Of a stretch of 64,000 bases of DNA, positions 25,291 to 52,061 are shown in pieces (position 1 is the first letter of the stretch; each line of letters starts with the position of its first letter). The translations under genes were made by a program, and so were the position numbers. A model generated the notes under the pieces. It saw only the letters and a program-made list of their open reading frames with translations. It was not told the DNA's origin and did not search any database. Where the stretch lies: positions 166,070-230,069 of IMG/VR virus record IMGVR_UViG_3300028840_005860. One strand, given 5' to 3'.

Positions 25291-25596
25291 ATGACCGATA
25301 GACCCTCAGCACGTCGAATCGTGATGTCCAAATCGGTGGCCCGGCAGTGGCTCATCAAGCAGGCCCGCCCCGAGTACCGCATCAAGGTGTTCAACCCCAA
25401 CGCCCGAGACTACCCGTCCGTCCTGCGCGCTTTCCGGGACGAGAGGCTGAGGATGGCCGGGGTGTCGCCCCTCCCCGACCTCGGCGTGAGGGAGGACTTC
25501 GGCGGCTTCTACGTCTGGTCGTCCGACCGAGAGGCCCTCGCCACCCTCCAGGGGTGGTTCGAGAAGCGCGGCCTGGAGACCTCCTGGATCTGGTGA
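25291..25596 (+). CDS. Hypothetical protein (late operon)
   Basis: GAGGAGG RBS; carries SVARQWLIKQA. Confidence 0.75.
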   Translation: MTDRPSARRIVMSKSVARQWLIKQARPEYRIKVFNPNARDYPSVLRAFRDERLRMAGVSPLPDLGVREDFGGFYVWSSDREALATLQGWFEKRGLETSWIW

Positions 25597-25597
25597 G

Positions 25598-26041
25598 ATG
25601 GCCGCCGTTCGCACTCGCCTCCAGAGCTGCTTCGTCTACAACGTGCGGATCGATGATCCGTGCAACCCGTCGTGGCAGTTCACCATCATCGTCAACCAGG
25701 ACGGCACGTACGGAGTCGAGAACATCCGCTCACCGAACGGGAGCATCTGCGACCCCAACACCCAGCTCCCGGCGGAGGTCCTCGACGAGATCAACGCCGC
25801 CAAGGGAGACGTGGAGAACATCTTGGCACAGACGAGCGCAGTCAACGGAACCCTGACCTTCACGGCCCAGACCAGTCAGTCGATAGTGTTCGCCACGCCG
25901 TTCGCGAACACGCAGTACAGGGTCTACGTGTCGCTGCCGGACTTCGTCGACTGGAAGATCACCAACAAGACCCTCACCGGCTTCGACCTGGAGATCAATA
26001 CCACCTACACCGGGACGGTCGGCTACGACGTGTTCGTCTAG
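25598..26041 (+). CDS. Putative virion structural protein
   Basis: Thr/Asn/Val-rich beta protein; C-terminal IVFATPF....Y.V...NKTLTGF domain typical of fibre-tip/H-lectin-like modules. Confidence 0.6.
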   Translation: MAAVRTRLQSCFVYNVRIDDPCNPSWQFTIIVNQDGTYGVENIRSPNGSICDPNTQLPAEVLDEINAAKGDVENILAQTSAVNGTLTFTAQTSQSIVFATPFANTQYRVYVSLPDFVDWKITNKTLTGFDLEINTTYTGTVGYDVFV

Positions 26042-26049
26042 GAGGAAGC

Positions 26050-26118
26050 ATGTCTCGTGCCGACGAGAAGGACATGGTGAGCCACGACCCGCCCGAGGTG
26101 CGGCTCTGGTGGGACTAG
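26050..26118 (+). CDS. Micro-ORF, 22 aa (MSRADEKDMVSHDPPEVRLWWD)
   Basis: AGGAGG RBS at canonical spacing; fills the intergenic gap. Confidence 0.5.
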   Translation: MSRADEKDMVSHDPPEVRLWWD

Positions 26119-26138
26119 AAGCCTGAGAGGAACCTGAT

Positions 26139-27746: not shown

Positions 27747-27756
27747 GAGGAGAGCC

Positions 27757-28323: not shown

Positions 28324-28374
28324 TGCCATCGTCTCGCGGTCTTTGCGCCACGCCTCGAACGAGCCGTGGATTGG

Positions 28375-28416: not shown

Positions 28417-29358
28417 GTGCCCACTCCCGACCCGAAGAGAGTCGCCGCGGCCTACCGCCAGGACCTCGTGAAGACCGCCGGCGAGGTCATTTTCAAGAAG
28501 GACCGAAGCGGCGACGTGGGCTCGTGGGCCTACACGGACGTCGCGCCGAGTCGTCGCGAGATCCCGGCCGACTTCAACTACTCCCCGAAGAACCGCAAGT
28601 CGCTCGCGAAGATCCTGCGAGGGACGCTCGCGGGCCTCGGGCACGTGCTCGCCGCCTACACGCAGTTCGCGAAGCTGAAGTCCGCTCGCCTGAGCCCCGA
28701 CGGGAGCCTCGGCGGCCGCGGCTACATCCAGAACATCGCGGACATGCGCAAGCAGTACATGAACTGCGTCGAGGCCCTGTCGGCCCTGAGCGACACGGTC
28801 TACGACGAGCTCCACGCCCCGCACTGGGCCGTCGTCTCTCGCCAGGAGGACGACGGGGAGAAGGCGGAGGTCTCCGCCATCATCGACGACGCCGAGACCA
28901 TCCGTCGGGACCCGCAGGAGTGGGCCGAGGAGGTGGAGGCCGACGAGGCGATGCAGGGGAAGCGGAGGGGTCCTCGACCGCAGGTGCCGAAGATACGGGT
29001 GCCCGAGATGGAGCCTCACGAGATGCAGGAACGGGGAAGGGGACAGCCACCCGACCTGTTCGATGCCCAGAACCTGGTCCCGGCCACCATGGGCAAGGTG
29101 GCCTCTCTCGAGGAGAGCGTGCGACGAGTCGCCTACGGCTGGATCGCGGGAGAGTACAGGGATCGCATCCCGGGCGGACTGGCCGACGAGAAGCGGCCGT
29201 CCGACTTCGATCCCGTCCAGCTCGAGAAGGGAATCAAGGTCGAGCGCGAACATGCCGGGAAGGACACGGCCCTAGCCCGGGAGATCGCGATGGATCATCT
29301 CACCGAGGACCCCGACTATTACCGGAAGCTCGAGAAGATAGAGGAGGGAGCTCACTGA
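28417..29358 (+). CDS. Putative head-associated protein with C-terminal DUF5661-like domain
   Basis: GGLAD...FDPVQLEKGIKVEREH...AREIAMDHLTEDPDYYRKL; start placed after the late-type promoter motif. Confidence 0.7.
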   Translation: MPTPDPKRVAAAYRQDLVKTAGEVIFKKDRSGDVGSWAYTDVAPSRREIPADFNYSPKNRKSLAKILRGTLAGLGHVLAAYTQFAKLKSARLSPDGSLGGRGYIQNIADMRKQYMNCVEALSALSDTVYDELHAPHWAVVSRQEDDGEKAEVSAIIDDAETIRRDPQEWAEEVEADEAMQGKRRGPRPQVPKIRVPEMEPHEMQERGRGQPPDLFDAQNLVPATMGKVASLEESVRRVAYGWIAGEYRDRIPGGLADEKRPSDFDPVQLEKGIKVEREHAGKDTALAREIAMDHLTEDPDYYRKLEKIEEGAH

Positions 29359-33488: not shown

Positions 33489-35390
33489 TTGGCGAAGGGC
33501 ACGGCCAACCTGGCTCGGATGGCCCTCAACGCCGGGCGACGGTCGGAGAACGCGGGGCAGCGCGACGTCGTAGACATCATCACGTTCGTCGAGGCCGAGT
33601 GGGGCCTCGACATGCGCCTGTACCCCGTCCAGCGCGTCATCCTGAAGGCCCACTACGGGATCCCGCTCGACGACAACCTGGCGAACAGCTTCGTCATCAC
33701 GGACTGGAGGCGGGAGAATCCCCGGAGGTTCACGGAGGCCGAGTACCTCCGGTACCTCAACGACGAGGGCCGCTGCAACATCCGAGAGGTCGTGCCGGGA
33801 CAGGAACGCCGACAGATGATCCTGAGCGTCGGACGCCGGAGTGGCAAGACCTTGATCAGCTCTTGCGTCGCGGCCTACGAGACCTACAAGCTGATCAACA
33901 AGGGCAACCCGCAGCACTACTACGGCCTGAGCCCGTCGAGCAACATCCAGCTCATCTCGGTCGCGACCGGCAAGGACCAGGCGGGCCTCCTCTACCAGGA
34001 GGTGTCGGGCCACTATGCGAAGTGCTCGTTCTTCAGGCGCTACACGGCGAACCACACGATGTCGTACGCGCGGTTCCAGACCCCCCACGACATCGAAGAG
34101 TTCGGCCCGTACTCCGAGAACCCCCAGGCGCGGGCGAGCATCAAGGCCACTTTCCATGCTTGCAACGCCAAGGGCCTGCGCGGCGCGGGGAACGTGGTCG
34201 TCATCCTCGACGAGGTGGCCCACTTCGTCGAGCAGGGCGGGAGCTCGGCCGAGGACGTCTGGAAGGCTATCGCACCCTCGATAGGTACGTTCACCCCGAA
34301 GGACGAGTACGGCGAGCCGATCGATGGTCCCGGCACCCCCTCGGAGGGTCGCACGATCCTCATCTCCTCCCCGCTCGGCACGCAGGGCCTGTTCTACAAC
34401 AAGTTCCGACAGGGGATGTCGGGCGGCGAGTCGTCCGAGCACATGCTGTGCGTTCAGGCCCCGACCTGGGAGGTCAACCCGACGGTCTCGGCGTCCGTGT
34501 TCAAGGACGCCTACGCCGAGGATCCCCGGATCTTCTTCACCGAGTGGGGGGGCGAGTTCAGGAGCGCCACCCTGGGCTGGCTGGAGGACCCGAAAGACCT
34601 CTTCGACTGCGTGGATCCGCATCTGCGTCCCCGGTCTCGGGGACAGGCGAGGCGCCCGTACTTCGTGGGATTCGACCTCGGCCTGGCGGGGAACGGGAGC
34701 GCCCTGGCCATCGTCCACATCGACGAGCTCAACCGGATCGTCCTCGACTTCGTCGGCCAGATGAAGGCCGGAGAGGGAGAGCACGCCGACAAGGAGCGCC
34801 TCGACTTCGAGGAGGTCGCGGCCTGGATCTTCTCCCTGTCGCGGCGCTTTCACTTCTACAAGGGCCTCTTCGACCAGTGGGGCGCGATCCCTCTCGAGCA
34901 GGCGCTCGCGAAGAAGGGCCTCAAGCAGTTCGAGGGCAAGCTGTTCTCGCCGCAGGAGAGGTCCCAGATCTGGCAGAACTTCAAGTCGATCCTCTGGGAC
35001 CGCGTGAACGGAAAGCCGCGCCTCGTCCTGTACGACATCACTCCGGAGGAGAAGGCGAGGTACGAGGCTCGAGACGAGAAGCCGCCCGAGCACCTCCTCT
35101 ACCTCACGCAGCTGACCGAGCTGCAGGCGACCTACAGGAGCAAGTACGTCATCCACGTGGAGGCGCCCCAGGTCGAGGGCAAGCACGACGACATGCCCGA
35201 CGCCCTGTCGCGAGCCGTGTGGCTCGCGAGCCAGCATCTCGGCAAGATGAAGCACATCGCGCGGTCGAAGAACGGCATCAACCCAAGCTGGCCGCAACCC
35301 TCGTCGAAGGTCCGGCGTGCGAACCATCGCAAGAGGCTCCTCGGAGGCTCGGACCCGAAGAGGCAGGTCCCGCGGAGGCGCTACAGGTAG
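33489..35390 (+). CDS. terL: Terminase large subunit
   Basis: Walker A GRRSGKT, Walker B VVILDEVAH, ISSP coupling motif, nuclease GFDLG and HDDMPDA. Confidence 0.92.
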   Translation: MAKGTANLARMALNAGRRSENAGQRDVVDIITFVEAEWGLDMRLYPVQRVILKAHYGIPLDDNLANSFVITDWRRENPRRFTEAEYLRYLNDEGRCNIREVVPGQERRQMILSVGRRSGKTLISSCVAAYETYKLINKGNPQHYYGLSPSSNIQLISVATGKDQAGLLYQEVSGHYAKCSFFRRYTANHTMSYARFQTPHDIEEFGPYSENPQARASIKATFHACNAKGLRGAGNVVVILDEVAHFVEQGGSSAEDVWKAIAPSIGTFTPKDEYGEPIDGPGTPSEGRTILISSPLGTQGLFYNKFRQGMSGGESSEHMLCVQAPTWEVNPTVSASVFKDAYAEDPRIFFTEWGGEFRSATLGWLEDPKDLFDCVDPHLRPRSRGQARRPYFVGFDLGLAGNGSALAIVHIDELNRIVLDFVGQMKAGEGEHADKERLDFEEVAAWIFSLSRRFHFYKGLFDQWGAIPLEQALAKKGLKQFEGKLFSPQERSQIWQNFKSILWDRVNGKPRLVLYDITPEEKARYEARDEKPPEHLLYLTQLTELQATYRSKYVIHVEAPQVEGKHDDMPDALSRAVWLASQHLGKMKHIARSKNGINPSWPQPSSKVRRANHRKRLLGGSDPKRQVPRRRYR

Positions 35391-39100: not shown

Positions 39101-39634
39101 ATCGCGCGGCAGCTCTACGCGGGGCTCGGCGTCACCGAGACCCTCCTGAACGGAGAGTCGAGCTACAGCGGCGACCGCATCAACCTCGAGGTCATCAACA
39201 CGCGCTACATGCTGCTCCGCGAGAACGTCCAGCGCCTCGTCGAGGAGTACTTCTTCAAGCCCATGTGTCGTCGGATGGGCTTCGTCGAGGAGGACGAGGA
39301 CGGCCAGCTCGAAGTGATCTACCCGCGCCTGAGCTTCACGCGGCTCGCCCTGCGCGACAACCAGGACACCTTCGACGCGCTGTTCAACCTCTACCAGAAG
39401 GGGAGCCTCGACATAGAGACGATCCTCGACCTGCTCAACATCGACCCGGTGGTCGTCCGTGAGAGGCTCGAGGCCGACTTCGGGACCTTCAACGACTCGC
39501 AGTTCAACGAGGTCCTGCGCTCCGCCTACGGGCGCGTCGGCGACCAGCTCGTCGAGGGGTCCGACATCGTTCAGAAGATCGCCGACGTCCTGGGCGTGGA
39601 CTACAAGAAGCCCGAGGAACCCGGACGGTTCTAG
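36185..39634 (+). CDS. Portal protein, intein-containing
   Basis: Downstream of TerL; about 616 aa after intein removal; RFFY..EPFVGQALD, G.SILQR and PIRLV portal-like segments. Confidence 0.8.
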   Translation: MAAEGSKNAIAGSASPSSQRKNEDERVVADVPNTRPELHIGKPTRVVVGSMRSRGGPTSFRARVASCGPGTGSYGGVSAGGGGTGYGGYGGFGGNFGAGAVMQASSGNFYSPELSTDFLELPQSLNEQWNYYRFFYDNEPFVGQALDLHTELPLSKVRLGRPKANDRRMAEASLRFCEKWVKRIGLLQRLLEIVHDYFKIGEVYIFCEDANPEIPQDVRKKVVRRVEADGTLTETWVDREDANERTVRWMKQHYKGWTSIRTVPPEQIHLQTFPFTDEVLIDLIPDSKSRHLLDMADQGDKYAARVVKSMDPVVVEALRRGENVPLSTDPDGGSFVHYMANKKSQYEPRGHSILQRCLLPGTLITVQRNGIVRQVPVEDVDTTTDLLLTHKGRFRRATAGSRPVRERVAVLRIEGVEDPLALTTDHEVLLVREDGTEAWVPAGEVREGDIVRESHVVPENEPVPEIDLATWWSNRRLNVARRFRENAKEVEIRNREVRVIDVEDGPDGLTVTFEHDNDDAGQIEATEGMRRFVAWLKNLDAPTEATYDEIAAVTGVDKSKLRNYAHLLRREADLRTESRSLGRGRGRRTTWWPLSGDAVVPRETRCVTMTSPVARIEVDEGFCYLLGTWVGNGNIWTSDELVLNSHSVAWTAGTGDLEQEIKAEEMRLASASFGDQCSDGHLFGEESGSDAFRIEDPLLARWFMDEFGHSAQSKRIPRWLFDLDEARVLAFLRGLLDTDGNLQERTTQTTIRFEMDNRVLLDQVHLLCNRLGIKTQVRNYVKPARSWTRRWKTKRGWKEKSYHYDAKAYATLTATRHADVRRWAEGSVKGSKVEWQDKTHPNALRTQFVNGWLTRRVEGTGLVPYEGLVFSFDVEGDESHVTHQMVTHNCLRTLVFFDKLRQAQTSIASRHMTPIRLVYAEDMDEENTEALRDQIDLALQDPDYTIVTNFQVTWEEMNSNGRLLELSSEYDLIARQLYAGLGVTETLLNGESSYSGDRINLEVINTRYMLLRENVQRLVEEYFFKPMCRRMGFVEEDEDGQLEVIYPRLSFTRLALRDNQDTFDALFNLYQKGSLDIETILDLLNIDPVVVRERLEADFGTFNDSQFNEVLRSAYGRVGDQLVEGSDIVQKIADVLGVDYKKPEEPGRF
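37253..38851 (+). mobile_element. Intein with LAGLIDADG endonuclease and extra HTH-like insertion (533 aa)
   Basis: R|CLLPGTLITV...LTTDHEV...LGTWVGNG...FLRGLLDTDG...MVTHN|C. Confidence 0.93.
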
Positions 39635-39675: not shown

Positions 39676-42240
39676 GTGCCCTCGCTCATCCCCGACAATT
39701 TCACGAAGGAGACGCCTCCCGAGCCGGTGCGTCAGCTCGCGGAGGCGTGGCTTCGCGCGAGGCTTCGGGGTGCCGAGCCCGACTTCCTCGACGTGGCGGA
39801 CGGGGCGGTGATCGGCGTCTACCGGCTGCCCTGCGGCCTCGTCAGGCGGGCGAGCCACAGCTTCTCGCGGTGCATGGCGAAGGGCTGCCAGAAGCCGCCC
39901 GAGGTGGAGTGCCTCTGGGCCGAGGGTCGCGGCCGTGCCTGGCACTGTCAGAAGCACCACGACGCCTGGGTGAAGGAGGACGGTCCGGACGGGCGCGACA
40001 TCATCAAGCAGCAGAAGATTCCCGACGGCGTCGTGGGCGAGAAGTACGGCGAGTATCCGGCGAAGAAGACGGCCGGGGACGGCGACGAGTTCAAGAAGGG
40101 CGACAGGATCGTCTACGGCCCGCTCGTGCCGCCCGGCCCCAGGTACCTGCCGGGGATCGTCGTGAAACCGCAGGCCCCCTCGAGCCTCGACAACCCCGTG
40201 ACGATCAGGGTGAAGGGAGAGGGCACGTTCGAGACCGACCCCGACAGCGTGACTCCGCTGTCCCGGTGGAAGCGAAACCCGGATCTCGGCAAGACGGCCA
40301 AGGCGACAGGCAAGAAGACCGGCGTCGGCGAGCACGTCGGGCTGTTCATCCCGCTTCCGAAGGATCTAGCCAAGAAGTTCCCGTCGCTCGGCGAGGACGA
40401 CCCGTCCCCGTCCCACGTGACCTTCCTCTACATCGGCGACTGCAAGGGCAAGCGCGACCAGAAGGTCCTGGTCGACACGCTCCGGGACGCCTGTCGGCGC
40501 TGGTGGCCCGGCGCCAAGGCCACGCTCGGGGGCCTCGAGTACTTCACCCACGAAGACAAGGATCGTCGCGTCCCCCACGTCTCCGTGGACTTCGACAAGG
40601 ACCTGTCGGGTTTCAAGCACCGCATCAGGCAGGAGCTCGAGGAGAACGGCGTCGAAGTCGAGGACAGCTGGCCCGACTTCAAACCCCACGTGACGCTCGG
40701 ATACCTACCGGGTACGGACTCCGAGTGGAAGGGCAAGGTTCCGAAGGGTTCCTGGAGTTTCGACGAGATGGAGGTCTGGGGTCTCCCGAAGGTCCACAAG
40801 CTCAAGCTCGGTCCCTCCATCTACAAGATCTCCGACACGTGGCTCCGCGGGAGGTTGCACCGCTACGTTGCCGCGCGCTACCTCGTTCGCAAGATCGCCG
40901 GATGGTGGGCCATCAGGCCGGGCAGTCCGGGAATCAACTGCCCGCCCGTGGACAAGGGCGGCCTCATGAATGCCATCCCCGGCACGGACCCGCCGGACGC
41001 CCGCTACAACGGGGACGGCCCGGCCGACATCATGGACGCCGCGCTCGCGGACGTCGACATGGAGTACCTGATGGAGTGGGGGCGCCCCGCGACCAAGCAG
41101 GAGCTCCAGGCGGTGTTCGACTTCTGCACTGGGGCCCTCCGCGAGGACGGTTCGAGGGACTACGGCAAGCACGAGCACGTGAATCAGTGGTTCGTCGAGT
41201 TCGCGGAATGGCTTGGCAAGAGGCCGAATGAGATCCGGTTCTTTCAGGGCGACAGCGACATCGTGGACGCCCTCCGGCAGAACTGGGACGGTACGGGCGA
41301 GTCCCTGGACGCCTACAAGAAGGAGATCCTGGACCTCGTCGACAAGACCAAGAAGTTCGAGGGCGGTCTCGAGGCCAAGGACCTGGCAGAGCGTCTGAAG
41401 GCCAGAACCCAGGTGATCCACGACGAGACCTTCCGGGGCGAGGACTGCCTGGAGGGGGGAGAAGATCCCGAGATCGTCATAAAGCGGGTAGCATCGAGGT
41501 ACATGGCCTCGATCCCGCACGGCAAGAACGTCGCCCTGATGAAGTGGCTCTCGGACGTGACCAGGCGCCTGGGCGTCGCCCGGGACACCTACGTCGTCGG
41601 GGGTGCGGTCAGGAACTTCCTCATCGGTCGGCCCATCAAGGATCTCGACGTGGTGATCGACTCGGTTCGGGCCGGACGCGACTCCGCGTGGCTGGCGGCT
41701 CAGATCTCCCGGCACGTGCCCGCTCCGACGAACGTCACGACGAACCAGTACGGCGTCGCCATCCTGACGATCAAGGGGAGCTGGGTCCTCGACGGCGAGG
41801 ACATGCGAGGCGAGGTGATCGAGATCGCCAACGCCCGCAAGGAGAGCTACGCGGAGGGACTCGGGAAGGGGCACAAACCCCATACGGTTGCCCCGGCCAC
41901 CATCGAGGAGGACGTCAGGCGTCGAGACTTTACGATGAACGCGCTTCTCTGGCGTCTGATGGACCTGGCGCACGGGCCCGAGAAGGCCGAGGTGATCGAC
42001 CTCACCGGCTGCGGCCGGCGCGACCTTGAGCAGGGGGTCCTGCGGTGCCCGCAGCCGCCCGACAAGGTGTTCTCTGACGATCCGACGAGGATGCTGCGTC
42101 TTGTTCGACTCGCCTCCAAGTACAATCTGAAAATCCCACCTGATGTGGCTGCCTCAGTACGCCGGAATGCAAGCAAACTGAAGAGAATGCCTTGGGAGGC
42201 GGTCGCGACGATCCTCATGCAGACACTGGAGGGCAGGTAA
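39676..42240 (+). CDS. Multidomain protein: Zn-finger-like, SH3-like, 2H phosphoesterase, and N-terminal part of a CCA-adding-type nucleotidyltransferase
   Basis: Two HxT motifs (SHVTF, PHVTL); YVVGGAVRN...KDLDVV, ARKESY, EEDVRRRDFTMNA, FSDDPTRMLR. Confidence 0.88.
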   Translation: MPSLIPDNFTKETPPEPVRQLAEAWLRARLRGAEPDFLDVADGAVIGVYRLPCGLVRRASHSFSRCMAKGCQKPPEVECLWAEGRGRAWHCQKHHDAWVKEDGPDGRDIIKQQKIPDGVVGEKYGEYPAKKTAGDGDEFKKGDRIVYGPLVPPGPRYLPGIVVKPQAPSSLDNPVTIRVKGEGTFETDPDSVTPLSRWKRNPDLGKTAKATGKKTGVGEHVGLFIPLPKDLAKKFPSLGEDDPSPSHVTFLYIGDCKGKRDQKVLVDTLRDACRRWWPGAKATLGGLEYFTHEDKDRRVPHVSVDFDKDLSGFKHRIRQELEENGVEVEDSWPDFKPHVTLGYLPGTDSEWKGKVPKGSWSFDEMEVWGLPKVHKLKLGPSIYKISDTWLRGRLHRYVAARYLVRKIAGWWAIRPGSPGINCPPVDKGGLMNAIPGTDPPDARYNGDGPADIMDAALADVDMEYLMEWGRPATKQELQAVFDFCTGALREDGSRDYGKHEHVNQWFVEFAEWLGKRPNEIRFFQGDSDIVDALRQNWDGTGESLDAYKKEILDLVDKTKKFEGGLEAKDLAERLKARTQVIHDETFRGEDCLEGGEDPEIVIKRVASRYMASIPHGKNVALMKWLSDVTRRLGVARDTYVVGGAVRNFLIGRPIKDLDVVIDSVRAGRDSAWLAAQISRHVPAPTNVTTNQYGVAILTIKGSWVLDGEDMRGEVIEIANARKESYAEGLGKGHKPHTVAPATIEEDVRRRDFTMNALLWRLMDLAHGPEKAEVIDLTGCGRRDLEQGVLRCPQPPDKVFSDDPTRMLRLVRLASKYNLKIPPDVAASVRRNASKLKRMPWEAVATILMQTLEGR

Positions 42241-42242: not shown

Positions 42243-43070
42243 GTGGCCGGAAGACCTTGGACGGAAGGAGAGGAGAGGCTTCTTCGCCACTTATGGAAGT
42301 CCGACCTCACGCGGGAGGAGGTCGCGGCACGGTTGCTAGGACGAACGCCGGTCGCCATACAGGTGAGGGCAAAGCGTCTTGGTCTTCGCCATACGGATGA
42401 GCAGTTCCGCCGGATCCTTTCGAAGAAAAGCAAGGGGGAGAACAATGGGATGTTCGGACGTGAGGGGCCGCGCAGAGGTGTAGTGCTCACTGTTACCCAG
42501 CGAGATCTTCTCAGAAAGAAGGCGCTCAACTCCTACAAGAATGGGCGACCCAAGATGGTCGGTGCTCGAAACCCGATGTTTGGTAAGCCGGGCACGATGC
42601 GCGGCAAGAAGTTGCCACCGTCGGCCAAGGCCACCCTCTCCGAGAAAGCCAAAGTCCGTTGGTGTCAGGCATCGGACGAGGAAAAGGCCAAGAAAGTCGC
42701 TCAGCTTCGTGAGGGTCGCGAGCGTCTCGGACGTGACAGCCCCTCATCGATCGAGGTGGCGATGAGGGAATGGTTGTCAGACTTGCAAACTGACTTTGAA
42801 GCACAGGTCGTGATTGGGTTCTACACCGTCGATTTCCTTGTATCGGAGAACAAGGTCATCGAGTGTCACGGCGACTATTGGCACGCGCACCCTGAGAAGT
42901 ACGCGAGCGGCGACCTTGATGAGACGCAACGGCATAATGTTCACCGAGACCGCCGCAAGGCCACTTTTCTCCGAAATCGGGGTTATGGGCTGCTTGTGAT
43001 GTGGGAGAGTGACATCAAGGAGCGTCCTTCGTGGTGCGTCTCGCAAGTGGAGGATTTTCTTCATGGGTGA
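42243..43070 (+). mobile_element. Free-standing homing endonuclease (HTH + NUMOD3 + Vsr/DUF559-like nuclease)
   Basis: WTEGEE..L...GRT..AI..RA..LGL; GENNGMFG and GARNPMFG; SSIE...YTVDF...IECHGDYWH; lower GC; own RBS. Confidence 0.85.
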
Positions 43071-43503
43071 TCCCAGGAAGGCTCTTCAGCAGATGAAGCA
43101 GCTCGGGCTGCTCGAGGTGGTCTCCGAGATGATCAGGTCGAGCAAGCCCTTCTCCGCCTACATGGCGAACCAGCTGCGGACGAACAGGAGGGTCCCCCTC
43201 CTCCTCGACCTCATGGACATGGGGGTCCCCGCGACCACGCCCCTCTCGTTCCTCGACCGCGCGGGACAGCAGCGCGTCCGCGAGGTCACGATGCCGATGA
43301 CAGAGCGCGAGGCCGCGGACTTCGTGAACCTCCTGATCAAGCCGCCCGTGGACAACAGGCGGATCATCGAGGAGCTCGGGCTCCCAGGTCCCGAGCGGCG
43401 CCTCATCCTGCCGATGGCGCGCGACCTGATCCTCAAGAACCCCCCTCTCGCGGCCGACGGGCGCAGGCTGACCGAGGAGGTCCTCCGAGCATGGCCGCGC
43501 TAG
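43063..43503 (+). CDS. C-terminal part of the split CCA-adding enzyme
   Basis: MGDPRKALQQMKQLGLLE matches the helix that follows motif E in class II CCA enzymes; VDNRRIIEELGLPGPE tail motif; GGAGG RBS inside the endonuclease gene. Confidence 0.75.
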   Translation: MGDPRKALQQMKQLGLLEVVSEMIRSSKPFSAYMANQLRTNRRVPLLLDLMDMGVPATTPLSFLDRAGQQRVREVTMPMTEREAADFVNLLIKPPVDNRRIIEELGLPGPERRLILPMARDLILKNPPLAADGRRLTEEVLRAWPR

Positions 43504-46500
43504 CACAGCTGGCCCTCCGCGTCGCCGCGAGGCACCTCGCAGCCGACGCCTACTTCGAGGTCGGCGAGGAGGTGCTGTACGGCAAGTTCAAGAACCGTCG
43601 CGGTCGGGTCGTCAGGATCTTCGACGACGAGCGCGGCGTCCCCTCCGTGGAGATTGAGCCGATCCCGAAGGGCCGCAGGCAGAACAGGATGGTGGGCCTC
43701 TACGGGATCTGGAAGCTGCCCGAGGCGCGGAAGACCGCAGCGATGGACCGCGAGGCCTGCATCATCGCGGGCCGCAAGTTCGGGGACGGCCTGTGCCTCA
43801 TGAAGACCCGCGACCGGGCCTACGATCCGAAGCTCCAGGTGCTCCACGTCGAGCGGGACGGCACCGAGATGGCCGTGGTGTTCGACAAGACCACGGGCTA
43901 CCTGGAGGGCGTCAACGAGCACGGCATCGGCATCGTCAACACGACGCTCATGGTCGTCCGGGACGAGCAGGAGGGCGTCAAGAAGACCAAGGGCGACAAG
44001 CAGAAGGGGCCCAAGAGGTCCAAGGACGGTCCCAAGATCTTCAAGGCGCTCGAGGCCGAGACCCTCGACGACGCCATCCGCTCCCTCGTCTCCTTCCGCG
44101 GCGGCATCAAGGGTCACACGTTCGTGGCGGACGGCGAGCGCATGGTCTGCATCGAGCGCAGCGGCAGGCATCCGGCCAAGATCCACCGCCTCGACCCGAC
44201 GCGCGTGAACACGCGCACCAACCACGGAGTCGCCTACCCCGACGCCGGCTACACCCACGGGGACGACTACGTGTCGTCCATCGTGCGGCGCTGGGAGGCC
44301 CAGAAGCGCCTCCAGAACGTGAACAATCCCGAGGTCGTGGCCCCGGCCCTGGTCCAGGCGATCCACGAGGCCGACAGCCCGTTCAACCCGGTCCGCTGCA
44401 CCGACAAGATGCGGACCACGAGCCAGCTCACCATCGACACGACGAACCCGACGCTCTACCTGTACGTCATCCCCGGGCACGCCGACCTCTCCCCCCCGCG
44501 CAACGTCCTCCCCGACGGCCGACGCCCCAAGATCCCCGTGCGGACCTTCCGCTACCGGCAGAGGATGGAGGACCGCACGGAGCAGCCGGGCCGGAAGACC
44601 GCGCGGGAGGTGCTCGCGCGCTACAAGTCGAAGAAGAAGGTCAGGTCCGAGGACGGCGACGAGACGACCGTCTACGAGTACTCCGAGCGCCAGGTCCAGC
44701 ACCGCAACCGCGAGAAGGCCGAGCGCATCGAGAGGCTCCGTGGATCGATAGGCAAACTCCGCGCGCAGCTCGAGAAGGACATCAGATCCGACGACCCCAA
44801 GAAGCGCGACGTCGCGGCCGCCGTGGGCCTCATGGATCACACGTACGAGCGTCCCGGCAACGACGAGTCGGCGTCCGACGGCCACTATGGCGTGACCAAC
44901 TGGAAGGTGCGGCACGTCAGGTTCGGCGACGGCCAGGCCAAGATCAGCTACGTCGGCAAGTCGGGCGTCAGGCAGCAGAAGTCCGTCACGGACCGAGACC
45001 TCGTGAAGGCGCTCAGGGCCGCCTGCGCCGACAAGGGCGCCGAAGCGACCTGCCTGGACGTGAGCGCCGACGAGGTCAACGAGTACCTCAGGCCCTTCGG
45101 CGTCACGGCGAAGGACCTGCGAGGGCTGCACGCCAACGGGGAGATGAAGGACCGGCTCAGGCGCGTGCGCCGGGAGGGCGGCCCGCTGCCCGAGGACCCG
45201 GAGAAGCGCGAGGAGAAGCTCAGGAAGGAGTTCGACAGGGCCCTGGACGAGGCCGCGGAGACGGTGGGCCACGAGCCTTCGACCCTCAAGAGCCAGTACC
45301 TCGTGCCCGGCCTGGAGGAAGACTACAAGAGGGACGGCACCGTGAGCGAGAGCCACGCCAAGAAGGCGGCCGAGGCCGTGACCGACACGGCGTCCTTCTA
45401 CGTGATCGCGCCCGAGGCGCTCAGGGGCATGCTCGACGACACCGACTGGCTCGAGCTCGCTCACGACCTATGGCCTGGAGAAGGGCGCCCGGGCGGCGAC
45501 GCCGAGGTGCTCGTGCCCGAGATGGAACGCCAGGTCCGCGAGAGCGGTGGCGCCGTGCTCGACACCGGATGGGACGGCGGCTTCGACGTCGGCGTGAGGG
45601 GCAAGTACGACGAGCTGGGCCGGATCGAGCCCTTCGACCTGCCCGTTCGCGAGAAGGGCGCGGTGCCTCCCTACGGGTTGCGCAAGAGCGCGTCGCTGCT
45701 GCGCGTCGCCGCCGAGGAGGGGACCTCGGCCGAGCGCAGGATCCTCGCCAACGCCCTGGTGGCCCCCGTGCTCGTGGCCCGGACGCGCGAGTGGTGGCTC
45801 CGCGAGGCGCCCCACCTGTACCGGATTGCTCGCGATCACGAGAAGCCTCGACCTCGCATCGAGGGCCTCGAGTTTCCGTCCAATCTTTTCACGATCCTAT
45901 GGTACGAAGACGCGGACGGGAACGACCTGGGAGACGGGGACCTTGAAGGAGAGCCGGGCGCGCCAGAAGGAGCACAGTACCAGCACAGCCAGTTCCCGCA
46001 CGTCCTGCACCACAACGTCCTGCGCCTCAACGACGACGGAACCTCCACGGACCTCGGCGGCGGCGAGGCGTCCTACCCGGAAGACCTCGTGAACGCGATG
46101 GTTCGCAGCGGGGACTGGGACGTGGGCGACGCGATCATGGTCGCCGCCCAGTCGTGCGAGCGGTGCCTGAACGTCCTGTGCCACCATTACGACCTGGACG
46201 ACGGCTACCCGTTCGGGTCCGAGGAGTACTGGAGCGCTGGCACCCGTTGTCCGATGTGCGAGAACGTGCATGCTCCCGCTCGCACGGCCGCGACGCCGAA
46301 CTACGAGGCGTACGTCGAGCGCAAGAGGCGGGAGGGAGAACCCCCGCTCGACCGCGAGCGGTGGGAGCGCAGGGTCCTGGGCGTGCGCGACGAAGAGGGT
46401 CCGCGCGACTGGGACGCGCACCGCAGAGACGTGATGCGGCGTCACGAGCTGGACAAGCTGCACGCGCCCTACGATCCCGAGAACAAGCACCTGCGCATCG

Positions 46501-49500
46501 ACCTGATCAGCGTCCGAAGGGACGCGCGCGGAGAGGGTCACGCCCGACGGGCGATGGAGGAGATCCTCGGATGGGCGGACCGGGCCGGAGCGACCGTCAC
46601 GCTGACGCCGACCTCCGAGTTCGGCGCGTCCAAGAAGCGCCTGACGCGGTGGTACGAGGGCATGGGGTTCGTCCCGAACAAGGGCAGGAACAAGGATTTT
46701 CGGTTTCAGGACGCGATGATCCGCGCCCCCCAAGTCAAGACCGCCACGAAGTCCGACGCCGAGCTCGACGAAGAGGCGGTCGAGGAGATGCTCCGCGAGG
46801 AGCCCAAGAAGAAGCCGCCTCGCTACGATCTGCGGGACAACCGACCCTTGGAGGACGACGACGAGGAGGACCTCGAGGGCCTCGGCGGCGGGGACCGGGG
46901 CGACCGGGACCTGAGCCTCAAGTGGAACAAGGTCGGCAGGCGCGTGGCGTTTCGCTGGCTGGCGACTCCCGGAAGGCTCTCGGCGGTCAGGACCGCCATG
47001 CGTCATCGGGCGAAGGTCACGCCCGACTCCGAGTTCCAGAAGGAGATCGCGGACAAGAAGTTCAGGCACCCGGAGACGGGCAACGAGGTCGCGTTCGGCT
47101 CCCTGCCGACCGAGGAACAGCACCGGATTTTCGAGGAGTGGAAGAAGAAGCACGCGCCGAAGGGGGAACCGGCCGAGGGCAAAGAGAAACCCAAGGAGGA
47201 GCCCGAGGGTCGGTCGCCCGAGGAGATCGACCAGGACATCTCCGAGGCCCGCGAGGCGGCCAAGAAGTTGAAGGGCGAGATCCGCGACCTGAAGGAGAAG
47301 ATTGGCGACGCGAAGAAGGCCATCGAGGACTGGACCGAGCTCACGAAGGGAGAGGTCGGCGAGGAGATGAGGAAGAAGGGCGACGCCGTCATCAAGGAGA
47401 TGAAGCGCATCGTCCTGGATGCCGAGGACGACATCGAGTACAAGACCCAGGACCTCAAGGACGCGCGCAGACGCGTCCAGGAGCTGAAGGAGGAGCGCGA
47501 GGACCCGACCGGAGCTAAGGCGAAGAAGGAGCAGGAGGAGAGGGAGCAGAAGGAGAAGCGGACGCGGCAGGCCGTCAAGGACACGGTCGCGGCGATGGAG
47601 AAGATGCTCGGCAGGGGGTCGAGGCTGCCGCAGGGGACGAGGCAGGAGATCGAGAGTGCGCTGGGCGACTTCGACTACCCCCAGCTCGAGGCGTTCGCGC
47701 TGGCGTTTCAGGGCGAGCTCAAGGACCTCAGCGGACAGGACCCGACGTCGCCCGACGTGATCTCCATGGCGAACCGGCAGGCGAAGATCGGCTTCGACGT
47801 GGAGGGTGTCACGGATCCCGAGGAGCTGGCGAGGCGTGCCGCGGAGGTCGGCTACGTGACGAACGTGGTCGCCAACCCGATGGTCGTGGGAGGCAGGCCC
47901 GTCGGGCAGACGGAGATGGACGACGCGGCACGGTCGGCGCGGGCGAGGGAGGCGTTCGCCCAGTTCGAGAATCTCCACCCGAAGCTGCAGCGCATGGCGG
48001 CGGAGCGCATCCGCGAGGAGCTAAGGGGCCTCGACGAGGACACCGACCGCGCCGTGGAGCTCGAGTCGATCCTCAGCGCCGTCGACCTGGCGCACGTGGG
48101 CCAGACCGGAGAGGCCCTCCCCGGACGCCCGCAGCCGAGCGCCGGCAACGCCGCGCTGATCAAGCGCATGATCGCGGACGGCAACGCCGACAGGATGTTC
48201 CAGACGAAGAAGGACTTCTTCTCGGAGGGATCGCGGGAGGCGATGGCGCAGGCGCTCGAGGAGATGGACGACGCCGACGTGGCCAATTTCATCACGGGCG
48301 ACGACCCGAGCCACCCGTTCTACGAGCTCTCCCAGAGCATGAGGACCGAGGGCGCGGGCGAGTTCAACCAGATGATCAAGGACTTCCTGATCAAGGACTT
48401 CCTGAACGACACGTGGGGCGACCGGGCCGCGCGCGACGTGATGGAGGCCGCGGGCGTCGAGGACTGGGACAGCCCGGAGGCGCGGGCCGAGCTGCTCGAG
48501 GAGTCCAAGCGAGCCGGCGAGACGCCCCTGGGTCAGGTGCTGGAGGCGAAGGAGCGTGTCGAGGCGGCGCGGGCCGCGGGCGAGGAACCCAGCCAGGACG
48601 ACCTGGACCTCGTGAGTTCGTACTTCGAGCCCGAGGCCGGCGAGGGGGTCGTCGGCAATGCCAGGGCCCTCCTCGGCCTCCTGAGGGACAAGTTCAAGAA
48701 GCACGTGATCTCGCCCGCCGTGGCCGTGCTCAACCACTTCGTGAAGACGCGGGATCCGAAGGTACTCAGCCAGGAGACGTTGCCGCACCCGGACGAGAGA
48801 TCCCCTGAGCCGAGACCCAAGGAGGAGCGCGAGAAGGCGCGGGTCGAGATGCCCACCGAGGCAGAGGCGCCCGAGAGCAAGCCTGGTAAGCCCGAGGTCG
48901 TGGCTCCCGAGTGGGCCGCGGAAGGACGCAAACCGGCCGAGGACCTGACCCCTGAGAAGGCGATGCGCAGGCGCATCGTCCTGAAGAGCGAGCGCCAGAA
49001 GCTAGAGGCCCAGCGAGAGAAGGCGCCGCCCGAGGAGCGCGGCAAGTACGACGTCAAGATCAGGAAGCTGGACAAGGAACTCGAGAGAGCCAGCGTTCCG
49101 AAGAGACCGGAGAAGAAGGCCCCTGAGCCGGAGAAGAAGGCCCCTGAGCCGGAGAAGGTGAAGGAGCCTGAGGTGGTGCGGAAGCGTCGCAAGCAGCTCG
49201 AGAAGGTGAAGTCCGTGCGCGACGAGGCCAGGGCGGCGCTGAAGGAGATGGAGCCCGCGGCCCGGAAACAGCTCGAACAGAAGCTCGAGAAGATGGACGC
49301 CGCCATCAGGCAGGTCGAGGAGCAGCACGCCGAGGACGAGAAGCACGGCCCCGGGGACGTCTGGAAGACCAAGGGAGGAAACTGGCGCGCCAAGAACGAG
49401 GAGGGTCTCTCCAGGAGTTTCAAGAAGAGGGACGAGGCCGAGACGTACGCGAGAGGGGAGCCCGAAAAGGAGTGGAGCGCCGAGTTCAAGGCAGTCTCGC

Positions 49501-49625
49501 CCGAGGAGGCCTGGCGCGGGCCGACGCGCTTCGCGGGGAACGTGACCGACGCGTGGCTCGCCCGCATCCGAAGCATCCATCCCGACGATCCCGACCGCCC
49601 CGTCATCGTGCTCGACGCGGCCTGA
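43491..49625 (+). CDS. 2044-aa polyprotein-like head protein: SH3-like, Ntn hydrolase, DNA topoisomerase IB, GNAT, coiled-coil domains
   Basis: CIIAG...KTRD...EGVNEHG...RTNHG (Ntn); ERPGN, VGKSG, KDLRG, VGHEP..LKSQY (Topo IB R-K-R-H-Y); ISVRRDARGEGHARRAM...WYEGMGF (GNAT). Confidence 0.85.
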   Translation: MAALAQLALRVAARHLAADAYFEVGEEVLYGKFKNRRGRVVRIFDDERGVPSVEIEPIPKGRRQNRMVGLYGIWKLPEARKTAAMDREACIIAGRKFGDGLCLMKTRDRAYDPKLQVLHVERDGTEMAVVFDKTTGYLEGVNEHGIGIVNTTLMVVRDEQEGVKKTKGDKQKGPKRSKDGPKIFKALEAETLDDAIRSLVSFRGGIKGHTFVADGERMVCIERSGRHPAKIHRLDPTRVNTRTNHGVAYPDAGYTHGDDYVSSIVRRWEAQKRLQNVNNPEVVAPALVQAIHEADSPFNPVRCTDKMRTTSQLTIDTTNPTLYLYVIPGHADLSPPRNVLPDGRRPKIPVRTFRYRQRMEDRTEQPGRKTAREVLARYKSKKKVRSEDGDETTVYEYSERQVQHRNREKAERIERLRGSIGKLRAQLEKDIRSDDPKKRDVAAAVGLMDHTYERPGNDESASDGHYGVTNWKVRHVRFGDGQAKISYVGKSGVRQQKSVTDRDLVKALRAACADKGAEATCLDVSADEVNEYLRPFGVTAKDLRGLHANGEMKDRLRRVRREGGPLPEDPEKREEKLRKEFDRALDEAAETVGHEPSTLKSQYLVPGLEEDYKRDGTVSESHAKKAAEAVTDTASFYVIAPEALRGMLDDTDWLELAHDLWPGEGRPGGDAEVLVPEMERQVRESGGAVLDTGWDGGFDVGVRGKYDELGRIEPFDLPVREKGAVPPYGLRKSASLLRVAAEEGTSAERRILANALVAPVLVARTREWWLREAPHLYRIARDHEKPRPRIEGLEFPSNLFTILWYEDADGNDLGDGDLEGEPGAPEGAQYQHSQFPHVLHHNVLRLNDDGTSTDLGGGEASYPEDLVNAMVRSGDWDVGDAIMVAAQSCERCLNVLCHHYDLDDGYPFGSEEYWSAGTRCPMCENVHAPARTAATPNYEAYVERKRREGEPPLDRERWERRVLGVRDEEGPRDWDAHRRDVMRRHELDKLHAPYDPENKHLRIDLISVRRDARGEGHARRAMEEILGWADRAGATVTLTPTSEFGASKKRLTRWYEGMGFVPNKGRNKDFRFQDAMIRAPQVKTATKSDAELDEEAVEEMLREEPKKKPPRYDLRDNRPLEDDDEEDLEGLGGGDRGDRDLSLKWNKVGRRVAFRWLATPGRLSAVRTAMRHRAKVTPDSEFQKEIADKKFRHPETGNEVAFGSLPTEEQHRIFEEWKKKHAPKGEPAEGKEKPKEEPEGRSPEEIDQDISEAREAAKKLKGEIRDLKEKIGDAKKAIEDWTELTKGEVGEEMRKKGDAVIKEMKRIVLDAEDDIEYKTQDLKDARRRVQELKEEREDPTGAKAKKEQEEREQKEKRTRQAVKDTVAAMEKMLGRGSRLPQGTRQEIESALGDFDYPQLEAFALAFQGELKDLSGQDPTSPDVISMANRQAKIGFDVEGVTDPEELARRAAEVGYVTNVVANPMVVGGRPVGQTEMDDAARSARAREAFAQFENLHPKLQRMAAERIREELRGLDEDTDRAVELESILSAVDLAHVGQTGEALPGRPQPSAGNAALIKRMIADGNADRMFQTKKDFFSEGSREAMAQALEEMDDADVANFITGDDPSHPFYELSQSMRTEGAGEFNQMIKDFLIKDFLNDTWGDRAARDVMEAAGVEDWDSPEARAELLEESKRAGETPLGQVLEAKERVEAARAAGEEPSQDDLDLVSSYFEPEAGEGVVGNARALLGLLRDKFKKHVISPAVAVLNHFVKTRDPKVLSQETLPHPDERSPEPRPKEEREKARVEMPTEAEAPESKPGKPEVVAPEWAAEGRKPAEDLTPEKAMRRRIVLKSERQKLEAQREKAPPEERGKYDVKIRKLDKELERASVPKRPEKKAPEPEKKAPEPEKVKEPEVVRKRRKQLEKVKSVRDEARAALKEMEPAARKQLEQKLEKMDAAIRQVEEQHAEDEKHGPGDVWKTKGGNWRAKNEEGLSRSFKKRDEAETYARGEPEKEWSAEFKAVSPEEAWRGPTRFAGNVTDAWLARIRSIHPDDPDRPVIVLDAA

Positions 49626-49857: not shown

Positions 49858-49872
49858 CGATTTTCCTCTTAT
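49858..49872 (+). promoter_or_regulatory. Putative late promoter motif
   Basis: CGATTTTCCTCTTAT upstream of the protease/scaffold/capsid operon. Confidence 0.65.
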
Positions 49873-49952
49873 ATGGGTCGCCAGATAGGACAAGGGGCCC
49901 CCCTCTGGCGAGGGCGTCGCATGGCCCTGCTGCAGTCCTCAGGAGAACTTCG

Positions 49953-50456
49953 ATGCCGAAAAAGCTCAGCAAGCAAGGTGCCATGCAGGTCACGACCGAC
50001 CTGGATCGAATCGCGTCCCTCTTCGAGCAGGAGCACGAGACGCTCGGGATCTCCGACAAGATCGCCGGCGACTTCGCGCTTCGCTGCGACATCCTCTCGA
50101 CCGCGGTGGAGAAGACCGCGGGCATCGAGCGCACCCCTGAGGGGAAGCTCAAGGACCCCGAGCTCCTCAAGCTCGCGCAGATGGACCCGACCCAGAACTA
50201 CACGGAGACCAAGGTCAAGCCGAACGAGTTCGATCCCTCCGAGATCGCCAAGGAGACCCCGGCCGCGCTCCTGCGGAACACCGACGAGCCGTACATGGAC
50301 GTCTTCCGTCAGGACGAGTACGACCAGCTCCGCGAGGTCCAGCAGACGGGCATGTTCTCGAACGCCAAGACGGCCGCCGTCCTCGTGAAGAAGATGGCCG
50401 CCCTGCTGGCTCAGAACAACGTGCCCCTTCCCGTCGCACGTCAGCAGGCCGAGTAA
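49953..50456 (+). CDS. Putative head/core protein
   Basis: AGGAG RBS before ATG 49953, downstream of a late-type promoter motif; KTAG and KTAA motifs. Confidence 0.7.
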   Translation: MPKKLSKQGAMQVTTDLDRIASLFEQEHETLGISDKIAGDFALRCDILSTAVEKTAGIERTPEGKLKDPELLKLAQMDPTQNYTETKVKPNEFDPSEIAKETPAALLRNTDEPYMDVFRQDEYDQLREVQQTGMFSNAKTAAVLVKKMAALLAQNNVPLPVARQQAE

Positions 50457-50481
50457 CCCCTTCCTGGTCGGTTCTCTGCCC

Positions 50482-51411
50482 ATGCAGACGCCCAGCAACA
50501 TCGACCGTCTCGCCGGTCTCGAGGCGGAGCTAGTCAAGGCGCAGAAGGAGGCGGAGACGGTCGCGGGCTCGGTCGGGAAGGAGAACCCGGCCGGGGTCTC
50601 CCAGCTCAAGGCGGCCGCCAAGGAGCTGGGAGAGAAGCGTCGTCACGTCGTCGCCGCGCGAGAGGCCCTGCTGGAATTCGACGGCTACCTCCGAGCTAGG
50701 CAGGAGCTCGGGCGCCAGGAGTCCGACGATCCCGAGAAGCAGGGGCGTGCCGACCGGTTCGTCGGGGCCATCGGACAGCGGATGGCGGCGCGGATCGAGG
50801 AGGTCGTCGGGCGCCTCAGCGACGAGGTCATGGGCGACGTGTCTCACGTCTCCTCGGTCGTCCAGACGATCCGCTCCGTCCAGGACTCGGCCGCGCGCAC
50901 GAAGGCGGCCGAGGAGTGTGCCGCCCAGGTCGAGAAGATCCTGGCGGCGGCCAGGAAGGCGGTCGACAAGGCCGTCGAGGGGCGCCTCCCCGAGCCCGAG
51001 ATCGAGGAGGGGCTCGTCGACGACGTCGACGACGTGGAGGAGGCCGAGGAGATCGAAGTCGCCCCCGCGGACGATCACGGGTACGACCTCACCGCCTCCA
51101 AGATGTCCGACTTCATCAAGGAGAAGATCGAGGAGCGGGAGAAGGAGAAGGGGGACGAGGAGGGCAAGGAGAAGGGCGAGAAGCCGAAGAAGGGCGAGGT
51201 CCCTCCGCAGTTCCTCGAACACATGAAGAAGAAGAAGGCCGACGGCCACGGCTACGACCTCACGGCCGAGTCGCGCGTTCCGGGCAACGAGTCCAAGGGA
51301 CCGAAGGAGCTGGAAGAGGAGGACGAGGGTTGGGTCCCGGGTCACCGCACGCAGAAGAAGGCGTATGCCCTCACCGACGACGAGCCTCACGGCTACAGGC
51401 TGGACGCGTAG
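50482..51411 (+). CDS. Putative head/core protein with three HGYxLxA motifs
   Basis: Coiled-coil N-half, charged C-half containing HGYDLTA twice and HGYRLDA. Confidence 0.7.
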   Translation: MQTPSNIDRLAGLEAELVKAQKEAETVAGSVGKENPAGVSQLKAAAKELGEKRRHVVAAREALLEFDGYLRARQELGRQESDDPEKQGRADRFVGAIGQRMAARIEEVVGRLSDEVMGDVSHVSSVVQTIRSVQDSAARTKAAEECAAQVEKILAAARKAVDKAVEGRLPEPEIEEGLVDDVDDVEEAEEIEVAPADDHGYDLTASKMSDFIKEKIEEREKEKGDEEGKEKGEKPKKGEVPPQFLEHMKKKKADGHGYDLTAESRVPGNESKGPKELEEEDEGWVPGHRTQKKAYALTDDEPHGYRLDA

Positions 51412-51419
51412 GAGCACCG

Positions 51420-52061
51420 ATGCACAGACGTCAGGCGGATGAGGGCAACTGGCAGGCACGGGGGCAGGAGTTCGCCGTCGGCCAGTCCGTCAGGATGGTC
51501 AACGGGGGCTCGACCGACGAGGGCCGCGTGGTGGCCGTCTGGCCGGGCATCGGCATGGTGGACGTGCAGTTCCCGCACACGAGCTACAGGATGCCCGTCG
51601 AGAGCCTGCAGATCGTGAGTCCGGGCGACGACTCGTTCGTCACGCCCCTCCACGAGATGGTCCCGGGAGGGGCCGGAACCGTGGCCGAGGTGCCCGAGGG
51701 TGCCCTGGCGGAGGACCTTATCACGGCCGAGGAACCGCGCGTAGAGCTCGTCCACGAGGTCGGTCCCCTCGAGGAGCTCCGCAGGCAGGCGAGCATGGCG
51801 TCGAGGGTCGCCCGGGCCTTCGTCAAGAAGTCCCTCTACTGGCACGCCCGCGACCGCAAGTACCGGGTGAGCCGCGAGGAGCACGACAACGGGCAGTACC
51901 GCTGCCCGATCCGTGGCTGCGACGGCCACCTTCGGCGCGCGACCTACAAGATGCGCGACGGCGCGAAGATCAAGCTCCACGCCTGTCCCGCGTGCCTGTT
52001 CATGATCCGGGCGTCGGACCTCCTGGTCGACCACTGCGAGCCCGAGGAGGAGGTCTGCTGA
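51420..52061 (+). CDS. Putative head protein: SH3-like domain plus zinc ribbon
   Basis: FAVGQSV...GRVVAVWPGIGMVDVQF; CPIRGC...CPAC; AGGAG RBS. Confidence 0.7.
   Translation: MHRRQADEGNWQARGQEFAVGQSVRMVNGGSTDEGRVVAVWPGIGMVDVQFPHTSYRMPVESLQIVSPGDDSFVTPLHEMVPGGAGTVAEVPEGALAEDLITAEEPRVELVHEVGPLEELRRQASMASRVARAFVKKSLYWHARDRKYRVSREEHDNGQYRCPIRGCDGHLRRATYKMRDGAKIKLHACPACLFMIRASDLLVDHCEPEEEVC

Follow-up and report, generated by a model that had tools for sequence, protein, structure and literature searches.

A recurring RVAxRY motif in late proteins of a huge-phage clade, a possible capsid-targeting label

Background

This study concerns a short basic motif, RVAxRY, hereafter the tag, which recurs in late proteins encoded on a stretch of 64,000 nucleotides from the IMG/VR virus record IMGVR_UViG_3300028840_005860 (positions 166,070 to 230,069); the whole of this stretch is called the window. 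The window has a GC content of 65%, and all of its genes lie on the + strand. Bases 1-25.2 kb form a replication and recombination module with genes for a ribonucleotide reductase, a RecD2-type helicase with an intein, RecA, an SbcC-like ATPase, RlaP, a Mre11-like phosphoesterase, a PD-(D/E)XK nuclease, a primase and a clamp loader. Conserved genes with no assigned function start at 25.3 kb and are followed by the large terminase gene (TerL, 33489-35390), and then by the head genes and two very large multi-domain genes, which are listed together with the tag copies in Table 1. Three small proteins are encoded between the gene of the 2044-amino-acid (aa) protein and the protease gene, and the gene of a 213-aa protein lies directly upstream of the latter. 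Between the scaffold and capsid genes there is a candidate counterpart of the phage G capsid decoration gene, with which its protein aligns over the full length in tblastn.

The relatives of the window were recognised by its major capsid protein. Its identity with the capsid proteins of 80 IMG/VR contigs amounts to 89-98%, while the uncultured phage LR745208.1, of 485 kb, stands at 90%, Tunturiibacter phage Tunturi_5 at 48-50% and Bacillus phage G at 38-39%. Since these relatives sit on a 485-kb phage and on contigs of up to 619 kb, the window is taken to come from a huge phage, and a megablast search against annotated phages gave no near relative of it.

Results

Copies of the tag in the window

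All twelve peptides which an earlier note had quoted from the letters of this DNA are found in + strand frames marked as coding by the GC content at third codon positions, and their places are given in Table 1.

Table 1. Tag copies and the genes of the portal-capsid region in the window, by position
Feature	Position	Strand	Score or basis
KSVARQWL, residues 14-21 of 101-aa protein (25291-25596)	25330..25353	+	21.2 bits
KRVAAAYR, near N-terminus of 313/330-aa protein (28366(28417)-29358)	28435..28458	+	14.5 bits
RRVAYGWI in 330-aa protein, conserved G-K-x-A-S before, DUF5661 after	29122..29145	+	Alignment A1
Portal with intein	36185-39634	+	Pfam/PHROG matches
854-aa multi-domain carrier: 2H phosphoesterase, tRNA nucleotidyltransferase (CCA-adding)	39676-42240	+	Pfam/PHROG; directly after portal gene
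Degenerate RQLAEAWL, N-terminus of 854-aa protein	39730..39753	+	Below 8 bits
Tandem KISDTWL (degenerate) and YVAARYL after 2H phosphoesterase domain, then RKIAG	40825..40884	+	YVAARYL 14.5 bits
KRVASRYM, 27 residues before CCA-adding (PolyA_pol) domain of 854-aa protein	41482..41505	+	20.5 bits
2044-aa multi-domain carrier: topoisomerase IB, GNAT, long coiled-coil tail	43491-49625	+	Pfam/PHROG
LRVAARHL, residues 9-16 of 2044-aa protein	43515..43538	+	21.4 bits
Degenerate EVLARYK just before topoisomerase IB domain, KTA upstream	44607..44627	+	8.5 bits
RRVAFRWL after GNAT domain	46938..46961	+	12.6 bits
Degenerate NVTDAWL, 28 residues from C-terminus of 2044-aa protein	49539..49559	+	8.1 bits
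SRVARAFV, residue 129 of 213, between KOW/SH3-like domain and zinc ribbon (protein 51420-52061)	51801..51824	+	24.1 bits
Head maturation protease interrupted by intein; no tag	52063-54843	+	PHROG 18299, Hint and LAGLIDADG matches; no match of at least 8 bits
Acidic scaffold-like protein; no tag, conserved K-x-A-S sites	54803-56383	+	No match of at least 8 bits; sites kept in 11 homologues
Major capsid protein; candidate receptor	57248-58126	+	PHROG 2522

Scoring and controls

Matches to the regular expression RVA..[YWFH] were counted in the late and early proteins of the window and compared with shuffled sequences, giving seven late matches against 0.61 in shuffles and two early ones against 0.37. 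A position-specific scoring matrix (PSSM) of 14 columns, from which all bit scores in this report derive, was built by iteration on the loci of relatives with the window's own contig excluded from training. At a threshold of at least 12.8 bits it finds seven matches in the late genes of the window, where 0.14 are expected from shuffles and reversed sequences give one, although these matches are a measure of conservation and no independent discovery, since the training included orthologues of the window's late proteins. At the same threshold there is no match in the replication module, so that the earlier impression of replication genes without the tag is borne out, apart from the two early regular-expression matches and one early match at 10 bits or more. 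The tag was also expected to be commoner in late than in early proteins, and so it is (nine against one at 10 bits or more), but with such small numbers the contrast within the window is statistically weak (one-sided Fisher p = 0.048).

Seven of the twelve quoted peptides score from 12.6 to 24 bits, whereas EVLARYK and NVTDAWL reach about 8 bits and RQLAEAWL and KISDTWL stay below 8 bits; all four of these weak copies coincide with canonical copies in relatives. Two further candidates were rejected. The capsid protein's own RVARVYM (15 bits), considered as a tag or a clue to mimicry, belongs to a segment which is a fold element common to phage G and Tunturi_5, and a longer repeated domain around the motif was dismissed after all-against-all BLASTP of the window proteins gave only coiled-coil and low-complexity similarity.

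Conservation at orthologous positions

Although homologues share only 40-70% identity elsewhere and the flanks of the tag diverge, the tag itself stays in place from one orthologue to the next. In the 101-aa protein, whose ATG at 25291 is preceded by a GAGGAGG Shine-Dalgarno site, homologues retain the form M[TA]K-[KRS][VL]A-x-[RQK]-W-[LV]. For the 330-aa protein, in which DUF5661 occupies residues 285-327, an alignment of nine homologues (A1) shows a conserved PDPKRVAxxY at the first tag and KTA-GEV after it, the AGEV being invariant. The SRVARAFV copy of the 213-aa protein is conserved across homologues from 39 loci, and its V is near-invariant in an alignment of 29 sequences (A2).

In the 854-aa protein, relatives have NFTK-RVAARWL or KIAKRYL at the N-terminal position of RQLAEAWL; at the tandem site they have KKVAASWLRGKVAG and KVASTWI, the canonical copy opposite KISDTWL being KKVAASWL; and at the KRVASRYM site homologues read RVAARYM, RVASQHL or RVASLTV. 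The 2044-aa protein again has a GAGGAGG Shine-Dalgarno site upstream of its ATG at 43491, a start which places the beginning of the motif at residue 10, and giant proteins of relatives carry RVAARHM or RVAMRHL ahead of the same KOW-like GKYKNK segment. At the junction of EVLARYK relatives carry RVAARYKSKKK, and at the C-terminal position of NVTDAWL they carry RVAQAWL, RVAQVWL or KVAELWL. RRVAFRWL is embedded in a DLSLKWNK-V-x-R-RVAxRW module conserved in relatives; both at 46890-46961 and in the giant proteins of many relatives, internal tags of one class follow a longer conserved module, D-x-D-L-S-[LM]-[NK]-[FYW]-[KN]-[KR]-V-A. In these two large proteins every copy of the tag lies outside the Pfam domains and at their borders (2H, residues 244-349, and PolyA_pol, 638-790, in the 854-aa protein; Topoisom_I, 403-601, and GNAT, 995-1061, in the 2044-aa protein).

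Placement and modularity

The tag is found at either end of proteins, at the C-terminus very close to the stop, and in multi-domain proteins also where two domains meet. It is N-terminal in the proteins starting at 25291, 28417, 39676 and 43491; SRVARAFV is internal, and other copies are internal or C-terminal. Terminal bias was assessed on 128 non-redundant copies outside the 213-aa family with 1000 random placements: 52 of the 128 lie within 40 residues of an end of the open reading frame, whereas the random placements average 30 and never exceed 44. Many copies stand 4-9 residues before the stop codon and follow Ser/Pro-rich linker-like stretches, and thus have the arrangement known from encapsulins, a conserved terminal peptide with a flexible linker between it and the cargo. 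In large proteins there are 3-5 copies each.

The tag behaves as a module. Members of the 330-aa family are tagged at both ends; of the eight homologues in A1, four terminate directly behind the second tag and lack DUF5661, and others continue into it. In unrelated phages, DUF5661 proteins are mostly untagged. The 2H domain, together with its tags, forms a stand-alone protein of 212 aa in one relative, ending right after the tandem tags, a 497-aa protein with three tags in LR745208.1, and a part of the 854-aa fusion in the window. Topoisomerase IB with a preceding RVAARYKSKKK is found in proteins of 508, about 1,050-1,700 and 2,044 aa. In LR745208.1 there are also an ART-PolyVal domain with an N-terminal tag and a HAD-TopoIB protein with two tags. 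In general, DUF5661, 2H phosphoesterase, topoisomerase IB and ART-PolyVal occur with or without the tag, separate or fused, and the points of gene fusion and fission coincide with tags. Several unrelated enzymatic domains in one large protein of the virion module, the hallmark of polyvalent proteins, are present in the 854-aa, the 2044-aa and the LR745208.1 carriers.

Anatomy and predicted structure

The consensus from the relatives' PSSM is [S/M]-[A/P]-x-R-V-A-[S/A]-R-[Y/W/F/H]-[L/M/V]-[K/A]-[K/A]. The V, the A, the aromatic residue and the L at i, i+1, i+4 and i+5 would make one face of a helix, flanked by the two Arg, and the tag is thus predicted to be a short amphipathic helix. In AlphaFold2 models, all three modelled copies are in helices outside the confidently folded domains. 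The model of the 330-aa protein is poor outside DUF5661 (predicted local distance difference test, pLDDT, 47); it is of low confidence around both tags, with a low-confidence helix at 6-14 over the first. In the model of the 213-aa protein, the tag lies in a helix at 116-134 (pLDDT 48-66) between two confident domains, after a linker with pLDDT below 50; fold searches with this model gave generic KOW/SH3/Tudor matches only. The PSSM columns from the relatives' loci (L001-L167) show a Met at -3, enriched about 7-fold, and a small residue at -2; internal copies share this pattern, so that they may mark former N-termini or internal translation starts.

Range of the clade

LR745208.1, which took no part in the training, was scanned whole and gave 24 forward matches at 12.8 bits or more against two in reversed sequences (12-fold), and 30 at 10 bits or more against 4.6 in shuffles. 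The loci of the capsid clade have 112 PSSM matches against 0.8 in shuffles (about 100-fold enrichment), those of close relatives 47 against 0.8, and those of unrelated phages sharing only DUF5661 23 against 2.2. The tag persists in relatives with 55% GC and lower as KVASLYL or RVASKYM. In Tunturi_5 (141 kb scanned, 58% GC) the matches are at background, two forward against three reversed, and the first 40 kb of phage G, the part scanned, have none; with these two phages free of it in the stretches scanned, no cultured phage bearing the tag is known. The motif is thus real, acts on the level of the protein and is confined to a single clade.

Within the tag-bearing clade the capsid protein is 97-98% identical, as against about 70% for TerL and portal and 50-58% for the scaffold, an unusually strong constraint for a single protein. 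As for phage G, several of its head-module proteins in 9524-18253 (e.g. gp9, gp10, gp13, gp17, gp20) begin with a basic pattern, x-R-L-K-K or S-K-T-A-A-R-Y, which may be an analogous signal in that lineage. The phage G particle proteome (PMC12484599) was set aside for the question of the tag, as phage G has no tag in the 40 kb scanned.

A second late motif

Another pattern, [KR]-x-A-S, is enriched only in the late proteins of the window, those encoded in 25291-56383 (28 against 7.8 in shuffles; early 4 against 5.2). K-x-A-S is conserved at several sites of the otherwise divergent scaffold, in 11 homologues, and [KR]-x-A-S brackets both tags of the 330-aa family (as KTA-GEV and G-K-x-A-S) and stands at domain borders of the 854-aa and 2044-aa proteins. 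K-x-A-[SG] is enriched 3-fold within 25 residues of the tag, but it was rejected as an obligatory partner because only about 13% of tag copies have it within 20 residues. The tag itself does not fit a cleavage motif of the prohead protease, which should be present in the scaffold: neither scaffold nor protease has a PSSM match of at least 8 bits. We infer that [KR]-x-A-S would be the better candidate for the cleavage site of the maturation protease.

Other features of the window

Inteins bearing LAGLIDADG interrupt three essential genes, those of the RecD2-type helicase (3282-6932), the portal and the head protease, and the N-extein of the protease had no match in a PDB sequence search. Between the two large carrier genes, the gene at 42243-43070 has matches to DUF559 (Pfam) and to HNH endonuclease PHROGs, with an N-terminal GcrA/D5-like DNA-binding region; its counterpart is missing in four related contigs, and it resembles a mobile homing endonuclease. 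The gene immediately following that of the capsid protein, 58293-61436, encodes a 1047-aa protein composed of a LAGLIDADG endonuclease, a DNA methylase fragment, a CGNR zinc finger and a C-terminal helix-turn-helix. The 854-aa and 2044-aa giants near the portal fuse enzymes of RNA-repair and host-takeover type (2H phosphoesterase, CCA-adding enzyme, topoisomerase IB and GNAT), and in Tunturi_5 the tRNA nucleotidyltransferase has a gene of its own, which lies far away from the head module.

Discussion

With regard to the function of the tag, we tentatively favour the reading that it is a portable short linear motif serving as a capsid-targeting label, i.e., one directing internal or ejected cargo to the procapsid interior, in a huge-phage clade distantly related to phage G. 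Each cargo module, whether a separate gene or a part of a multi-domain protein, would carry at least one tag at an end or a junction; the tag helix would dock on a highly conserved part of the head during assembly, either the near-invariant major capsid protein or else the scaffold core; and this docking would trap the cargo inside before DNA packaging. The docking, the receptor, the packaging and the later release of the tagged cargo are steps that we infer. The reading is supported by the terminal or junctional placement of the tag, next to linkers and on unrelated domains of effector type, by the concentration of its carriers in the interval from portal to protease, the place of the genes for core and internal proteins in T4, and by the existence in this clade of one extraordinarily conserved head component, the capsid protein. 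Effector-type domains like those of the carriers are regarded in the literature as being injected together with the DNA (PMC7824862). The earlier note had proposed a targeting signal of this kind after the model of T4; what stands of it is a real and portable motif, helical and amphipathic by prediction, on unrelated domains and concentrated around the portal, protease and capsid genes, while the T4-like detail does not stand, since copies are also internal or C-terminal and number 3-5 in each large protein.

Several points weigh against a capsid-targeting label. We know of no virion proteome, structure or genetics for any tag-bearing phage, and no receptor for the tag was identified. The protease and the scaffold, which must also enter the prohead, are without it. 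An address label would hardly need 3-5 copies per protein. The carriers in LR745208.1 are scattered over the whole genome rather than confined to the head module, and most of them are left unannotated by Pfam and PHROGs. To these may be added the weak contrast between early and late genes and the dependence of the window matches on conservation, both noted above.

The dispersed carriers of LR745208.1 would be better explained if the tag docked some other shared partner, such as a hub of phage or host, a chaperone, the portal or a partner met after ejection, or if it made effector modules associate with each other, in both cases with no role in encapsidation. Such a function would agree with the features of a clade-specific short linear motif, and several copies per protein would suit avidity or clustering. 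Nevertheless, copies in the window and in the head loci of the clade concentrate between the portal and capsid genes, and the partner must be as invariant as the tag, the capsid protein being the outstandingly invariant protein; moreover, no candidate for another partner was found. We therefore consider this alternative unlikely, while giving it real weight.

Another possibility is that the head maturation protease uses the tag for recognition or as an exosite, so that the tag marks the processing sites of multi-domain proteins and propeptides. Tags do occur in the kinds of places where T4 and phiKZ-type phages have cleavage sites (PMC9026906), namely in N-terminal leaders, at domain junctions and close to C-termini, and the 3-fold enrichment of K-x-A-[SG] close to the tag, together with its presence beside both tags of the 330-aa family, points in the same direction. 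However, K-x-A-[SG] is near only about 13% of the copies, and the scaffold, usually the main substrate, lacks the tag yet has conserved K-x-A-S. In addition, the hydrophobic pattern at i, i+1, i+4 and i+5 is helical, unlike the extended P4-P1' pattern of cleavage sites, and at the many copies 4-9 residues from the stop a cut would achieve little. This explanation is accordingly improbable, and less likely than the capsid-targeting label.

Finally, that the pattern is a by-product of composition or helical periodicity in a GC-rich proteome rich in Arg, Ala and Val, or a favoured linker helix with no specific partner, could draw on R, A, V and L being the commonest residues, on the sizeable chance expectations of the loosest regular expressions and on the 15-bit capsid match that is plainly a fold element, but it is largely refuted and hardly credible, because reversed and shuffled controls give 1-2 matches where 7-24 are observed, Tunturi_5 with 58% GC is at background, the tag survives in relatives of 55% and low GC, and the tag copies read in the window differ in codon use.

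The capsid-targeting label could also be part of a wider scheme, which as a whole we regard as rather doubtful. One label readable from sequence would define the whole internal cargo proteome of an uncultivated clade of 200-600 kb phages; modules would split, fuse or be recruited by keeping or gaining an RVAxRY helix; [KR]-x-A-S would let the maturation protease cut modules and tags apart; and the near-invariance of the capsid protein (97-98%) would follow from its recognising dozens of tagged clients.

The concept of a capsid-targeting peptide is known already. In T4, the capsid targeting sequence (CTS) of IPI-III and Alt is, like the tag, a short peptide on unrelated proteins whose genes lie close to those of portal, protease and scaffold. 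The idea that any protein gaining the peptide gets packaged is common to both; the function has been demonstrated for the T4 peptide and would be extended to the tag. Alt has propeptides at both ends (PMC9026906), just as the 330-aa family has a tag at both ends. The T4 CTS is, however, N-terminal, about 10 residues long, present in a single copy and removed by gp21 at L/I-x-E, whereas the tags here differ in sequence, are also C-terminal or internal and come in 3-5 copies per protein. In phage P1, an N-terminal signal of DarB, a very large anti-defence protein, suffices for capsid localisation (PMC9024508). The carriers here are likewise giant multi-domain proteins of effector type, but the DarB signal is described for one protein and not as a motif common to many, and P1 has no separate scaffold.

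Encapsulin cargo-loading peptides and the C-terminal tail of the HK97 protease are short conserved terminal peptides which, set off from the cargo by a flexible linker, bind to the inside of a shell with the HK97 fold. The C-terminal copies of the tag have a very similar layout: a linker, RVAxRYL, 4-9 residues and the stop. Their sequence is different, and the window, which encodes TerL, portal, protease, scaffold and capsid, specifies a true phage capsid. The carriers resemble polyvalent proteins of phages and conjugative elements (Iyer et al., as discussed in PMC7824862) in that they unite domains such as ART-PolyVal, 2H phosphoesterase, GNAT, topoisomerase IB, nucleotidyltransferase and peptidase-like ones; the work on such proteins describes domain repertoires, with no recurring junction or terminal peptide in the passages reached by term look-up (PMC7824862). 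The titles and abstracts of the literature searched hold no description of the RVAxRY motif, and term look-ups within single papers brought up none. New are the sequence, the fact that it is used at junctions as well as at either terminus, its multiple copies and its clade-wide spread over dozens of families.

If the tag is a packaging label, the proteins which uncultivated huge phages deliver into cells could be read directly from metagenomic sequence. The delivered set in the window would include RNA-repair enzymes, a topoisomerase and an acetyltransferase, to which a relative would add an ADP-ribosyltransferase. The label would also explain how giant multi-domain proteins get built and broken up in evolution, would account in concrete terms for a capsid protein so extremely conserved, and would provide a compact peptide that could be transferred to foreign proteins in order to load them into large shells of the HK97 fold. 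Should the tag bind something else, it would still be a new clade-wide interaction motif which links dozens of proteins with no assigned function to one partner.

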